From: Ascidiella aspersa | Taxonomy: Eukaryota | Length of the DNA: 64,000 nt | Assembly (NCBI GenBank): GCA_963924565.1 | Contig: OZ004614.1 | Coordinates: forward strand, 5,766,001-5,830,000 | Reading direction: 5' to 3' | Shown: positions 2,171 through 8,100 of the stretch, in pieces | Layout: the number at the start of each line of letters is the position of its first letter | Position numbering within the stretch: the stretch's first letter is position 1 | Made by a program: the position numbers and the translations under genes | Notes under the pieces: model-generated | Told to the model about the DNA's origin: nothing | What the model saw: only the letters and a program-made list of their open reading frames with translations | Databases searched by the model: none

Positions 2171-5100
2171 GTATTTCATGGTATTTTAATTAGTTTTTAA
2201 TAGGATTTTAAAGCAACGATCAATTTTTTTTACAATATTGGTTTGGTATATTAGCTGCTGTCAGTTAAAACTATAATATACTTTTACAATGTGGATATAC
2301 TCTACAATGATTTCAATTTGTAAAAGATAGAAAATTGTAACTGTTATTTTTTTGTGAACTAAACTGCTTTTTAGTAAATGGTTAATTGTGTGTTTCTTAT
2401 GTGCTGATAAAACTGTTGAAAGAAGTCTCTTATGGCTGCCAAAATAGAGATCCTAATGATCTTATCAGGCGTAATCCATTAGTTAGCCCTTTGTGGTGAT
2501 GACAGCAAACTAGGCCAGCAAAACAGCCAGTTGGTCGCCAACCAAGCTGCCAACTCAAACCGAATGGCTAATCAATTATTCAAACCGCATTCGGTAGCTC
2601 ACACTCGTCACAAGTCTGACAAATTAATAGTGTTCCGTTTTGATAAGGCACGACCTAAAAAAGAGATAGAAGTGACCACTATACAGTTACAAATACCCAC
2701 GAAAGGCTAACAAAGTGGTCGAAACCTTTAACCGTTTAAAAACAATGCAGAATTTTCTCAATATAGTTGTTATTTGCGTGCGTGCGCATTAGGTTAATTT
2801 TGTAGACCGGCGTAAATCATGTGAACAGCTACGGAGCCCAAGGCAGCACGTGAACCAGCAGTGCCTCGAAAATCGTCTAATCTCCGCGCTTTATCACCCA
2901 CCGTCGATTGTAGGCGGCAGCCCCATTTCGGTTCGTGAGAGAACGCTTGGTTTCCCACGCCGGGGCCACTGTTCGCTTTATTATTGCCAGTCCGCTATCG
3001 CCCGGTCTGCTTTGGTAATCGCGCCCTCATTTTGTGTCGCGTCGCTGATCGCCCAAGCGGGTGTAACCCACTGTGGTAAAATAACTTATTCGGACTGTCC
3101 TTATTGTGTGTTCTCCGTTTGCCGGCCTGATTAACTGTTGTTAAGTTCTACCACACGGCTACGGATTAGTTGGAAAGTTATGTCGTGCTAGATTAAGGTG
3201 TTCGCTTTCTATTCACTGTGGTAAAAAAATTAACCTTTTCCGGCTTTTTTTTATTGCGTGTTCTCCGTTCGCCGGTTCACATAAACTTCTTGTCAAGAGC
3301 TAACCCGCGGCCACGCTTTAGTCAGAAAATTTTGTCGACGTAGATCAGTTTTCTTACCTTTTTTGTACAAGCTTCCCCTTTGGTTGTACAGAATTTTAAA
3401 CGCCATGTTACAACAAACCCGAACCTAGAGTGAGGTGTTCGCTTTCTTTATTGGAATATAACCACTTGTGGTTTAAAGGCTGAACTGATGTTGCTTACTT
3501 TCCTACTTCGCGTGTGCGTTGCATGAATCGTCGGATTGGGAGAAAAATAAAACTTAAAACACGGCGCGGTTCTGCGCGTCCGTCATACAAAGCAGTTGAC
3601 CCGTTATATCGGCCATCGTTAACGTTAAGCCCAAAGCAGTCGAAAGTGGTGTTGGAAGGTCGCTTAGCGGTTCGAACTTCACCTGTTTCGAGGCCAATTT
3701 CGCTCGCGAAGCTAGCAATTAGGCGCGGATATAAAGTTCCCGCATCCCCTAGCGCTGGTAATTGAGGGACCAATTACCTCGACGGAAACCCCTGTCGTGG
3801 ATTTTGCGTCGCCAACAAACGCTTGCCACCATTTCGGCATTGTTAAACCACACAGGCGTCTTGCCCGCCGTTTTTTTTATCAGAATGCCGTTTTTCGAAG
3901 TTTATTCACTATTAAATAAGACTCTGAATTCAATGAATATGCTGTTGCCGCCAGGGATTTCAATTGTACAAATTGTTCTTCCGGCAAAATTTTATTAAAG
4001 TGCCAACGTTTCGATCACCTATTCTGGCAATCTTCTTCAGGGCAATATTTCGTCTTTAGTTGCAATTATATTGCCCTGAAGAAGATTGCCCGAATAGTTG
4101 GTCGAAACGTTGACACTTAAATAAAAAATTTGCGAAAGATTAATTGTAAAATTAAATAAGGCTCGTTGCATGTGAAAGCGCGCACAAAAGAGCAGCGTTG
4201 AAATGCGTATTGCGATTTTTTTCGTGCTTTGAAACACCAAATAGACCACAAATGTTTTTCCATTTCCGGAAATCTGCAAGCCAGCGCTGTTAGGAAATGA
4301 ACCAGCAGCCACCTACTGTACTGCTGCAAATCGCGCAGTCCTAACTCACGCCAGCAGCGCAAACCAGCGACAGCACCGCGAAATCGCGAAAGGCGGCTGC
4401 GCGCAGGCGTCCAAGCACGCGCGAGCAAGCGCCGCCGCGGCCCTGCATTGTCGAAACGGTGGGAAATAATATGCGCAAAGTCCCATCGTGGGAAAAAGAA
4501 GAAGCGTTTTCCCACCGCCAGCAAAGCGCTTGGCGTGCTGTTTGCGCGACGCGCCGAGAGCGCCCGCCTATTATTAGCTGGGCGAAGCGCGCAGGCGAGA
4601 GAAGCCTGTGGGAACCAAGGCGCGCCGCTCCTTCTCTTTCCCGTTTCTTTCTTTCTCCTGCCCGGCGTCCGATTTTCCCGCCCTCTCTCGACTCGGGTTG
4701 CCAGGCGAAAATCGCCTTTCTCTTTTTTTTCCTTGCGGCGCGCTCAGTCAGCTGAGAGTGTGTGTGCGCGCGCGCGCGGTGGAGAGAAGCAATGGCGAAC
4801 CGATTACCTCGCCCAAGGATTACTATGGCGAAAAGGCTACTGACTGAAAAACACACGCGAACTACGGCTTGTTGTTGAGCGAGTTATTGCGTAAAGGCGC
4901 TGACCCACTTTCGACTGGCATTTTCAGTCAAAATCAGTCGTAAATCGTGTGAAACGGCGGCGCGGTTTTGCTGTCCAGCCCTTGCACTAGCGACTAGTCG
5001 AAACAAAAGCTAGCTGCCCACCAACTGGTTGAATCGCTCGCGGGCACGATGTGCACGTTGTGCTTTCTATCGAGTCGCTTGCTTCTACTTCCCCTGCAAC

Positions 5101-8100
5101 CCTGCGATCCGCTTTCGAACCTTCTTTTGGCTTCGCGCGAACCACGGTAGGCAAAAATTTCAAATAGGACGTCATAAATTGACGTCACAATACAAATAGA
5201 CTTTAGAAATCTGCTGACTTCGGTCCAAATATGTCAAAGTGAAATGGAGTCTAAACACAGTCAGTGCAAAACCGTTTTATTTTTAATTCAACACTTTTCT
5301 TTGAAAAATTGATTACTTCTTAAATATACAGTACTATTTCAATTTGGCCTTTATGGACCCCCTAAAACTAGTTCACGAACCCCCAAGTGGTCCATGGACC
5401 CCCGTTTAAGAACCCCTGCCTTAAAGCGACCTCGTGGCTGGCGCTTTTGGTTGCCGAGATGGTTAAAGTTTAACGCGCGCCTTACACGTCAGTACTGGTA
5501 GGTCGTTTTACTGCGTAATGGCCATGTCAGTGTGCCCGCGTCGAACCGCTCTTTTATTGCGCGCTATCTAGACCGGATTTTCCCACGATGTGGGAATGCT
5601 GGCTATTTCTGAAGTCGTCCATTTCGTCTGAAGCGAAATATTCCGCGCAGCTGGCCCTAACCGTAGCGGTGCGCTCTTTACAAAAACCTGCCGCTTAACC
5701 CGGTGTATGCAAGCGCTTGGTCTAGTCTTGTCTCGTCCAGTCCCGTTGTCCCTGTTTGCCGCCTTTTGGATATGGCTCTGTGATAAACGAGCATTTGGCG
5801 AGCACATAGGTTTTCCAACAATTGTTCTATTTTTTTGATGATAGCGATTATTGTTGTTTATGTCGTATTAACGGCAAAGTCATTGTCTTGTAAACCTAGC
5901 CACTAATACCTTTGTCTAAAGTACCTATACAATAGAGTCTAAAATACTTAAAACTCTGTTATCGTTTAATTTGCGTGATTTTACTAGAGACAAATTGCTT
6001 TGCGTTTCCCAAGGAGAGCTATCTGGCTGCAGTTTACAGCGTTTTGTGTTTAACATAATAAAATTCTTGAGGTTTCGAAGTTATCATTCGTGACAAAAAC
6101 TCAGTTGTATTATCCCACAGTATAATAGCCGTTTGTTTGAACCAGATCTTAGTTGTTATTATCCTATTAAACATTTGTAAAACCGACCCGGCGACCCGAT
6201 TTTGACAGTCTACTACCTTTGTCATATGTGTTTGCCCAAATTTAGGCGCGTACTAAAAATTTTTATCAAACGTTCTTAAAAACGACGACTTGTTTTGACG
6301 GTTTTAACACCCCAAAATCGTAGCAGTAAATAATGTCACCCCAATGACCTTGTCTCGCCCCCTATCCACCTGCTATACGTCTGGTTTTCGGAGGCGGATG
6401 TCTGAAACAAGCAATCAAGCACTTAACAAAATGCCGCTGAGTCATTTTGATTAGCTTTTGCAAGGTTTTGTGATCGCACAAGCTAAGCTACGTCTGTGAC
6501 GTGAAATTGACTACAAGACTTTATGTCGTTTGGCCTGTCCGTTTAATTACCAATAAAGAAAACGCTTGAACTGTCCAAAACTGACAGTTTGACCGTTTCG
6601 ATGCTTGTTCGGTGTTGATTGTTTTGTGGCCACCTAAAACAACAGACGCCTTTGTCAGTTCGAAGAGCAAAACAAATCTAAAGTTAGGCTGTTTATATGC
6701 AGGCCAATTTTTTTGTCGGACTTATTCACTAGTAGGCATCAAAACTTTGGATAGCAGGAAACTATTGCAACTCAGTTTTCTACGTTAAATTTTTAAAATG
6801 GAAGGCACATTTCGCCATTTTATTGACGAGAGCATCAACGGTCAGCTCAAAAGCCACTTTTACCCCGGTATCTAGTTTTCAGCGGTGAACGGAATTTGCA
6901 ACTCCGTGTGCCCAGTCGATCAGCAATCAAACAACACTCGGTTGTGGGAATATTTCCTTTTATCTTGCCATAGCGCGCTACGACAATGGAGGTTCCCAGC
7001 ATTGAGGCAGCTCGCCACCGGTCCACAGTACACACAGCAGCACGCACACACACACTAACACACAAAGCGCGCGCCCGAATACACACAAACCGGCAGGCGA
7101 TAACGGCACAAGTCCACAATGTAGAGTCGAGCGTTGGCGTTTCCGATCCAAGCCGACGGTCGCTTGTTCGGAATTCCTATCCGAACCATTCGATCCTGCT
7201 GGGGCAAGAGGCCTTTGAGCCATTCCCACGCGGTTCTATGCTTCACACGAGGCAGGGGACGCCGGCTCCGGTTTCAATGCCCGCTTTCTTGCACCGGAAA
7301 CGCGCCTCGCAGCAACAACAAACGTCCGACCCTCCCCTCTCGCTACCCTACGACGGGGTGTACACTTTCAATAAGCTTCGGCCGCGCACTCGCAAAGCCG
7401 GCCGGAACCCTGTCCCGGGCTCGTGATTCCCTGGAAACATTTTGCACGAGTTTCGCGAACGAATTGATAACGACCAAGCGCCGGAGTTTCATTTGCGTCC
7501 AGTTTTGGAGCGGGCCTCCACACTAAGTCATAAAGCACTTAAATCAAAATGCGCAACAATGAAAAAAATAAAAAATAAAAAAATCAATCAAAATGCGGAA
7601 GTTTAACATGAACTTTGGAGCATATTGCTTGAAGGTTGTAGTAAGACACAAGAATAATATCAAAGCGGGTACGTAAGTAAGTATCATTTTTTGTTGAAAA
7701 TGAATGTCAAAAACAAATAAAGAGTTATTCGAAACGTTCAAAATGATACCTACATCTGTATGGACTTTGATTTGCTTTTTACGTCTTAACAGAAACTCAT
7801 GTTTTTTATGACTTTATGTCAATTGAAATAGATTTCCCCGAAAACTGTAATATGCTGTTAGTATTTTTTTCAACGCTGTCCGCCAAACTAGCCTTTTCAC
7901 GTCGCAAAAAGGGTGCCGGTCCGCCAAAGGCGGAGCGGCCACATTCGGCGAACGCAACACCACAGACACCGCTCAACAACAATAGAGTCCCTGGCACTTT
8001 ATCCTGTCGTCACGAAGCGCTGACGAACACAAAGCGAGATCGCGATCCGGGCCAGGGCTAATCTATTGTCCCGCCGCGAACTCGCAACCGCCTTTTCTTT

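Follow-up and report, generated by a model that had tools for sequence, protein, structure and literature searches.

The locus analysed here, a 64,000-nucleotide stretch of the Ascidiella aspersa genome (contig OZ004614.1, positions 5,766,001 to 5,830,000, hereafter the window), raises the question of whether a tunicate CSL gene, Su(H)/RBPJ, is regulated by its own product, a part of it having been predicted to be a Notch autoregulatory enhancer dense in Su(H)-binding sites. To our knowledge CSL/RBPJ is usually seen as a constitutive platform for Notch, the known exceptions being the socket-cell enhancer of the fly and the lag-1 intron of the worm. Exact searches identified 14 matches to YGTGRGAA in the window, 7 of them inside 2934–7249 (6.7% of the window) and 7 in the other 59.7 kb; both the seven perfect sites of the original prediction and its by-eye figure of about seven in the remaining ~59 kb were thus correct. 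The seven octamers of the region are all of the GTGGGAA type, and two additional GGTGGGAA sites (4458+, 4509-) raise its count of this core heptamer to nine (of 16 in the window), giving a homotypic CSL (Su(H)/RBPJ) motif cluster of nine GTGGGAA in 4.3 kb. The four near-consensus sites that had also been called are plausible as part of a broader excess, as the region holds 17 one-mismatch 8-mers vs. 10.3 ± 2.7 in shuffled sequence (a number matched by 3 of 200 shuffles); two such 8-mers, at 2934 and 7242, form the bounds of the region as originally drawn.

The first site, an exact CGTGGGAA in single-copy DNA, lies on the minus strand at 2952–2959. It is followed by a run of four sites in 157 nt inside a block of 57% GC that is unique in the genome: a GGTGGGAA at 4458–4465 (plus strand), with an exact core heptamer and only position 1 off consensus; a CGTGGGAA at 4487–4494 (plus); a second GGTGGGAA with an exact core heptamer at 4509–4516 (minus), head-to-head with the preceding site across a 14-nt spacer; and an exact TGTGGGAA at 4607–4614 (plus) that closes the run. 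Two abutting sites, TTCCCACG-A-TGTGGGAA, occupy 5580–5596 tail-to-tail (5580 on the minus and 5589 on the plus strand), with 7-nt palindromic arms and their heptamers 3 nt apart. The last two sites are an exact TGTGGGAA at 6943–6950 (plus) and a CGTGGGAA at 7223–7230 (minus), the latter in a second GC-rich block (7001–7500, GC 0.58). The base before the heptamer is C or T in seven of the nine cases and A in none.

Flanking sequences differ among all of the sites, and the DNA that bears them is single-copy (4150–5120, 5430–7580, and 2500–3960 save for short repeat pieces), in agreement with the earlier description of non-repeat blocks. The cluster is split by two dispersed repeats, neither of which contains a CSL site: a fold-back insert at 3971–4145 with 78-nt arms that are 85% complementary, and a high-copy element of ~300 nt at 5122–5425, for which there were 4955 first-look candidates in the genome and 40 scored non-self matches of 75–88% identity (38 of these at 84–88%). 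With the site-bearing blocks single-copy and the interspersed repeats free of CSL sites, we rejected a repeat origin of the sites. No Pfam family was identified in the cluster ORFs 4448–4840 and 6986–7423, and no Rfam family reached its gathering score over 1–24000. A 171-residue ORF overlaps the densest block of sites; a protein-database search with it yielded 599 word candidates, none of which scored, the ORF itself included.

The original prediction cited a uniform-composition expectation of about one site per 8 kb, which is arithmetically correct, and named enrichment over a GC-matched background as a test; this enrichment was upheld. Whole-window shuffles gave a mean of 6.44 YGTGRGAA, with at least 14 in 1 of 100, while dinucleotide shuffles of the region, matched in GC and CpG, gave 0.53 octamers and 0.44 heptamers (maximum 4), the observed region counts being attained by 0 of 1000. 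The empirical background comprised 205,426 bases drawn from this genome, namely three random 10-kb pieces and loci fetched for other reasons; these contained 15 octamers and 13 heptamers (0.063 GTGGGAA per kb), and any span of 4316 nt within them held at most 2 heptamers. Relative to the matched and empirical backgrounds the sites are enriched roughly 20- to 30-fold. Among the 3025 distinct 7-mers of the region GTGGGAA ranks third, behind A7 and CGCGCGC. The CpG richness earlier attributed to these blocks proved to be weakly distinctive (observed/expected 1.29 in the region vs. 1.17 in the whole window); the window is nowhere CpG-depleted, and what sets the cluster blocks apart is mainly a GC content of 0.46 vs. 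0.39.

This GC-richness relative to the surroundings is one of two points in favor of an explanation in which the cluster is not used by CSL at all, being bound by another TGGGAA-type factor or a non-functional by-product of GC-rich sequence; the second is that a Markov model of order four, fitted to the region itself, predicts 4.5 heptamers, although at this order it has largely memorised the sites. Orders 1–3, however, predict only 0.43–0.94 heptamers, and ten 1-kb background tiles of GC 0.44–0.50 contain 0.10 heptamers per kb vs. 2.1 per kb in the cluster. Nor does the scan statistic within the window favor a by-product, as 9 of 16 heptamers fell together in just 3–6 of 200,000 trials (249 of 200,000 for 7 of 14 octamers). 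Outside of GTGGGAA, the GGGAA sub-motif has 7 occurrences in the region vs. ~5.6 expected by length (77 in the rest of the window), showing that the enrichment belongs to the full CSL heptamer and not to the sub-motif. A last argument against this explanation, which we consider unlikely, comes from a Hes gene in the Ascidiella genome, whose upstream region shares GTGGGAA with the Su(H) region as the top common word.

This Hes gene was recognized by a bHLH exon (L047:340–459, minus strand) encoding KPLMEKRRRERIN and by an ORF ending in WRPW (L041:9280–9843, minus strand). Its upstream 10 kb contains 13 octamers and 12 heptamers, nine of the latter within 4.3 kb; the Hes cluster is as dense as that of Su(H) and serves as an internal positive control. 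In an unbiased k-mer comparison against the 205-kb background, GTGGGAA was the 7-mer most jointly enriched in the Su(H) and Hes regions (p = 9e-12 and 2e-10, respectively), and the same comparison, when examined for a co-factor motif common to both clusters, returned only words that overlap GTGGGAA or are rich in CG. Such density was found at only one of the three Hairy_orange loci checked, the upstream 10-kb pieces of the other two having 4 and 2 octamers. C7 carries another CSL gene, a divergent one that is 56–69% identical exon by exon; its locus has no site cluster, and no DNA-level similarity was found between that locus and the cluster region. One weak GH6 hit (28.1 bits) in the genome accords with a tunicate origin.

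Paired and bipartite arrangements of sites were also considered. The canonical SPS consists of two head-to-head Su(H) sites with a 16-nt spacer, 15–17 nt being described as tolerated in vitro (PMC7685452), and Hes/E(spl) SPS promoters of this kind share their heptamer with the Ascidiella cluster and with the equally dense Ascidiella Hes gene. Unlike the canonical 16 nt, the head-to-head spacers are 14 nt in the Su(H) cluster and 23 nt in the Hes cluster; the Su(H) cluster thus contains no canonical SPS, its sole head-to-head pair being 4487–4494/4509–4516. Exact head-to-head pairs were not in excess genome-wide (17 vs. 52 for a reversed-pattern control). One pair with a 16-nt spacer, at C6:32889213, was set aside as probably due to chance, as its neighborhood lacks Hes hallmarks and the base before each of its sites is A or G.

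The cluster sites could also, in principle, be the TC-boxes of PTF1-type trimers, which consist of Ptf1a, an E-protein and a CSL protein and would work here without Notch. Vertebrate Rbpjl is controlled by such Notch-independent trimeric complexes, and the divergent CSL gene on C7 could supply an RBPJL-like partner. A PTF1 bipartite site, however, has a CANNTG at a distance of one to three helical turns from its TTCCCA box, and no CANNTG E-box was found within 45 nt on either side of any of the nine cluster heptamers; as the defining E-box is missing near all nine, we rejected PTF1 bipartite sites and regard this explanation as very improbable.

Its domain content identifies the host gene as a bona fide Su(H)/RBPJ, as had been proposed: LAG1-DNAbind (in parts at 25170–25409 and 34645–34842), BTD (40218–40358 and 41844–42059) and TIG_SUH (49470–49661) all score above the Pfam cut-offs, in this order, on the plus strand and downstream of the cluster, and the BTD exon matches mouse and human RBPJ chains in the PDB with an E-value of 8e-24. 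Further upstream on the plus strand are the exon encoding PPKRLTR (23599–23637; acceptor ttttccag, donor AG|GTAAG, 12 residues plus part of an R codon) and the exon that begins LAG1-DNAbind (24418–24514, 32 residues); the remaining exons, with the Pfam matches, span 25170–51185 (plus), the last coding ORF being 50853–51185 (plus). Exon 1 is putative: at 2037–2170 (plus strand), a candidate with an ATG, 44 codons plus 2 bases and an AG|GT donor is phase-compatible with exon 2. With this candidate, intron 1 would be 21 kb long and have the cluster in its first 5 kb, 0.8–5 kb past exon 1 and 16–20 kb before the PPKRLTR exon, and the remainder of this putative intron (7250–23598) holds only 2 heptamers; should exon 1 be wrong, the first secure exon would be 16–20 kb downstream of the cluster. 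One RNA run, of which ~6% was read, placed 93 reads on 1250–7249 (87 of them only partly), mostly from the repeats at 3970–4150 and 5168–5420, while exon 1 was not usably covered and 4250–5049 and 6450–7249 were not covered at all.

The candidate status of exon 1, and the fact that introns of bystander genes often house enhancers, leave room for a real Notch/CSL-responsive enhancer that serves another gene, with Su(H) a mere host. Its target might be an unannotated transcript, a distal gene, or an NXPE-like gene whose end lies ~0.8 kb before the window; the NXPE4_C-domain gene is on the plus strand and ends at L048:9217, and at 8.8–9.0 kb there is a patch that resembles a promoter, with TGACGTCA, CACGTGAC and a CCAAT box. 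Against this, the closest candidate start codon with a donor is that of Su(H), at 0.8 kb from the edge of the cluster; the NXPE-like gene faces the cluster with its 3' end, which puts its promoter at a distance of over 8 kb; the partly read RNA run showed no transcription over the cluster; and the lag-1 cluster of the worm has the same position, within the 5' portion of intron 1 in a CSL gene. We think a target other than Su(H) quite unlikely.

Comparison with the worm and the fly bears on direct autoregulation of Su(H), and both precedents invoked in the original prediction are borne out by published accounts. According to Choi, Park and Hwang 2013 (PMC4133882), C. elegans lag-1 carries 13 LAG-1 sites in the 5' 1758 bp of its intron 1, far above the expectation of ~1 per 8 kb, and this cluster, whose sites were examined by binding assays and mutagenesis, is proposed to activate the gene in Notch-on cells and to repress it in Notch-off cells. 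The Ascidiella region likewise has a homotypic CSL cluster inside the CSL gene, in the 5' part of its (here putative) first intron. It is sparser, with nine sites in 4.3 kb (~3.8 kb without the two repeat insertions), and its intron 1 is a model. In Drosophila, as described by Liu and Posakony 2012 (PMC3390367), ASE5, of the Autoregulatory Socket Enhancer (ASE), spans 0.4 kb, has five sites and lies directly 3' of Su(H); high-affinity monomeric Su(H) sites in ASE/ASE5 drive and maintain Su(H) autoregulation, within a loose ('billboard') architecture said to need no paired site, and ASE5 requires local activators (Vvl, box A). Like the ASE, the Ascidiella region has several mostly monomeric Su(H) sites beside Su(H) and no canonical paired site; unlike the 3' ASE5, its cluster is 5' and roughly tenfold more dispersed. 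A co-motif common to the Ascidiella Su(H) and Hes clusters was not found. Two features of CSL autoregulatory modules are thus present in Ascidiella, a site cluster well above background and its location within or directly beside the CSL gene.

Because this cluster of the gene's own motif is dense, non-repetitive and as dense as that of Hes, Su(H) probably regulates its own gene; for the specific reading in which the 2.9–7.2 kb stretch is a cis-regulatory region of Su(H) working by direct autoregulation, we would put the probability at about one half. The proposal of a Notch autoregulatory enhancer is in this sense partly supported; occupancy by Su(H), responsiveness to Notch, the direction of the effect and the assignment of Su(H) as the target gene are predictions. 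The region is predicted to be composed of many independent, mostly monomeric, high-affinity CSL sites. When there is no Notch signal, Su(H) and co-repressors would occupy these sites and damp the Su(H) gene; in Notch-receiving cells, a complex of NICD, Su(H) and Mastermind on the same sites would raise Su(H) transcription, and the resulting positive feedback might sharpen or maintain the Notch-on state.

A search of the literature on Ciona and ascidian Su(H) and on RBPJ autoregulation, at the level of abstracts and mostly open-access articles, found no description of an autoregulatory cluster in the Su(H) gene of a tunicate. One that matches the known clusters in kind and position would add a chordate case to those of the fly and the worm, and would bear on whether Notch bistability generally involves an effector that amplifies itself. 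We speculate, tentatively and leaning somewhat against it, that CSL self-feedback through a homotypic cluster at the 5' end of the first intron is a bilaterian design, either ancient or evolved repeatedly, that operates in tunicates too. If so, the dosage of CSL would be a regulated variable in chordate Notch fate decisions rather than a constant.

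Pfam matches to LAG1-DNAbind, BTD and TIG_SUH followed one another in that order on the + strand of the window (24464-24514, 25170-25409, 34645-34842, 40218-40358, 41844-42059 and 49470-49661), and the BTD exon matched mouse and human RBPJ chains with an E-value of 8e-24, being near-identical across 48 residues. The Su(H) exons were searched and compared singly; a second, compact CSL (CBF1/Su(H)/LAG-1) gene lies on the minus strand of another contig of the same genome (G000:C7:7092748-7105501; fetched pieces L002, L004, L005, L008, L010, L012, L013 and L042). As this second gene is compact, has only 56-69% identity to the window gene, exon by exon, and has no CSL-site cluster in the ~40 kb examined, we consider the window gene to be the canonical Su(H)/RBPJ; the second gene may be RBPJL-like or a lineage-specific paralogue.

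The 5' part of the window gene includes a 39-nt exon (the PPKRLTR exon, 23599-23637; 12 residues followed by a parenthetical R) that has a good acceptor and donor and requires an upstream exon ending two bases into a codon. An ORF at 2037-2170 (ATG, 44 codons and a further AG, followed by GT) has the matching phase, and we infer that it is exon 1 of Su(H), in which case 2171-23598 would be intron 1; there was no usable coverage of this candidate exon in RNA run X3 (~6% read). An in-frame ATG is also found at 23565, 34 nt 5' of the PPKRLTR exon's acceptor, and could provide an alternative first exon or start (25 residues) if that acceptor stays unused. Within the putative intron we further observed a promoter-like patch (8800-9010) with palindromic TGACGTCA, CACGTGAC, a CCAAT box (GACCAATCAG) and CCGGAAAT, all in 200 nt, which may serve as an alternative promoter or as a further enhancer, and a minus-strand ORF (17738-18049) that by eye resembles the C-terminal portion of the reverse-transcriptase ORF of a retroelement.

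A recount of the CSL octamer YGTGRGAA found 14 in the 64-kb window, split just as the original prediction had claimed, with seven at 2952-7230 and seven in the other 59.7 kb. All seven of the cluster are of the strong GTGGGAA type, and two extra heptamers preceded by G (4458+ and 4509-) bring the region (2934-7249) to nine of the 16 heptamers in the window. These sites fall into four groups: a single site at 2952, a group of four in 157 nt (4458-4614) in a block of 57% GC, an abutting tail-to-tail pair (5580-5596), and, lastly, the sites at 6943 and 7223. The flanks of the nine heptamers are unrelated to one another, so the sites are independent and not copies of a unit. As for the near-consensus sites that were also proposed, the proposed bounds at 2934 and 7249 are indeed one-mismatch sites, but as a class such sites are only mildly enriched (17 in the region vs 10.3 +/- 2.7 in shuffles, with at least 17 in 3 of 200 shuffles).

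The predicted enrichment over a GC-matched background held for the exact sites: none of 1000 dinucleotide shuffles, which preserve the GC and CpG content of the region, reached seven octamers or nine heptamers (means 0.53 and 0.44, respectively; maximum 4). Markov models of orders 1-3 trained on the region predicted 0.43-0.94 sites; order 4 alone predicts more, as a model of that order memorises the sites. GTGGGAA ranked third among 3025 distinct 7-mers of the region, after A7 and CGCGCGC, and a scan statistic that corrects for the post hoc choice of the densest span, conditioned on the window's own totals, gave 249/200000 for 7 of 14 and 3-6/200000 for 9 of 16. An empirical background of 205,426 bases was assembled from the same genome, combining the remainder of the window with three randomly chosen pieces of 10 kb, the loci of neighbours and paralogues, and stretches of ~3 kb surrounding unrelated repeats. 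This small sample contained 13 heptamers (0.063 per kb), with at most two in any 4316 nt. Ten background 1-kb tiles with GC of 0.44-0.50 had 0.10 heptamers per kb vs 2.1 in the cluster.

The blocks carrying the sites had been described as CpG-rich and non-repeat. The second of these is borne out by a whole-genome search, in which 2500-3960, 4150-5120 and 5430-7700 matched only their own locus and short repeat pieces (2674-2745, 3341-3560, 3911-3960 and 7580-7700), all of which are without a CSL site; the first is a weak descriptor, the CpG observed/expected ratio being 1.29 in the region vs 1.17 in the whole window, and the blocks are distinguished mainly by GC (0.46, up to 0.58, vs 0.39). Two insertions interrupt the cluster: a fold-back element (3971-4145), whose 78-nt arms are 85% complementary and which has relatives elsewhere, and a ~300-nt dispersed repeat (5122-5425) with 4955 first-look genome candidates, for which 40 scored non-self matches were 75-88% identical, all but two of them 84-88%. 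RNA reads placed on the region derive mostly from these two repeats, and at both borders of the ~300-nt repeat there are loose-ended reads, an indication that it is transcribed somewhere. No Rfam family reached its gathering score in window 1-24000, including the fold-back, and no Pfam family was matched by ORFs inside the cluster.

There were three Hairy_orange matches in the genome, of which that at C6:32.96 Mb belongs to a Hes gene (bHLH exon KPLMEKRRRERINKSLNELK; KPLMEKRRRERIN...), with a last ORF (L041:9280-9843) that ends in WRPW; this gene served as an internal positive control. The 10 kb 5' of this gene (L047, C6:32963000-32972999) has 13 octamers and 12 heptamers, whose flanks show no relation to one another, nine of the heptamers lying within 4.3 kb, the same density as in the Su(H) cluster, and the Hes gene is probably a direct Notch target; in the corresponding 10 kb at the other two loci there are four and two octamers. 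When all 6- and 7-mers were compared, without bias, to the 205-kb background, GTGGGAA was the top word jointly enriched in the two loci, with nine in 3837 nt of repeat-free Su(H) cluster (p = 9e-12) and nine in 5500 nt of Hes upstream sequence (p = 2e-10) vs 13 in the background, and the next-ranked words overlap it or are CG-rich. As GGGAA outside of GTGGGAA is at background (seven in the region, 77 elsewhere in the window), the enrichment is specific to the full heptamer. That the cluster is bound by something other than CSL, or has no function, we consider unlikely. In the same genome a single Glyco_hydro_6 match (G000:C5:19613851-19614090) scored 28.1 bits, barely above the cut-off, and would fit the GH6-like part of tunicate cellulose synthase; such a match would be unusual for an animal that is not a tunicate.

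The spacers of the head-to-head pairs are 14 nt at Su(H) (4488/4509) and 23 nt at Hes, whereas the Su(H) paired site has a canonical spacer of 16 nt; spacers of 15-17 nt are tolerated in vitro, and a range of 11-21 nt has been proposed on the basis of ChIP-seq (PMC7685452). Neither pair being canonical, the cluster is best viewed as a homotypic array of monomer sites. Exact head-to-head pairs lying within 30 nt number 17 genome-wide (vs 52 for a reversed control pattern), and include both the Su(H) and Hes pairs; no Hes gene was found at the single pair with a 16-nt spacer that was examined. That the sites are of the bipartite PTF1 type is highly improbable and was ruled out, as none of the nine has an E-box within 45 nt.

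Upstream of the window lie an NXPE4_C-domain gene (L048:4564-9217, +), which ends ~0.8 kb before it, and further upstream a ZFAND2-like gene (L044:4330-7952, +; zf-C2H2_ZFAND2 and zf-AN1). Neither of these genes stands out as a Notch target, and the promoter of the NXPE-like gene is far from the cluster; that the cluster is a Notch enhancer serving another gene appears quite unlikely.

The worm and fly precedents invoked for autoregulation agree with the papers concerned. In C. elegans, intron 1 of lag-1 carries 13 sites within its 5'-most 1758 bp, and lag-1 expression during the AC/VU decision was altered when these were mutated (PMC4133882); in Drosophila the 0.4 kb ASE5, with five sites just 3' of Su(H), maintains socket-cell autoregulation (PMC3390367). 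The arrangement here resembles that described for lag-1, as the cluster is likewise at the 5' end of a (putative) long first intron; a literature search of partial, abstract-level coverage found no description of an ascidian or vertebrate counterpart. The most likely explanation, to which we assign a probability of about 0.5, is autoregulation, in which the region would be a putative regulatory element bound by CSL and used by Su(H) to control its own expression: without Notch, Su(H) would repress its own gene via the cluster, and with NICD it would activate it.
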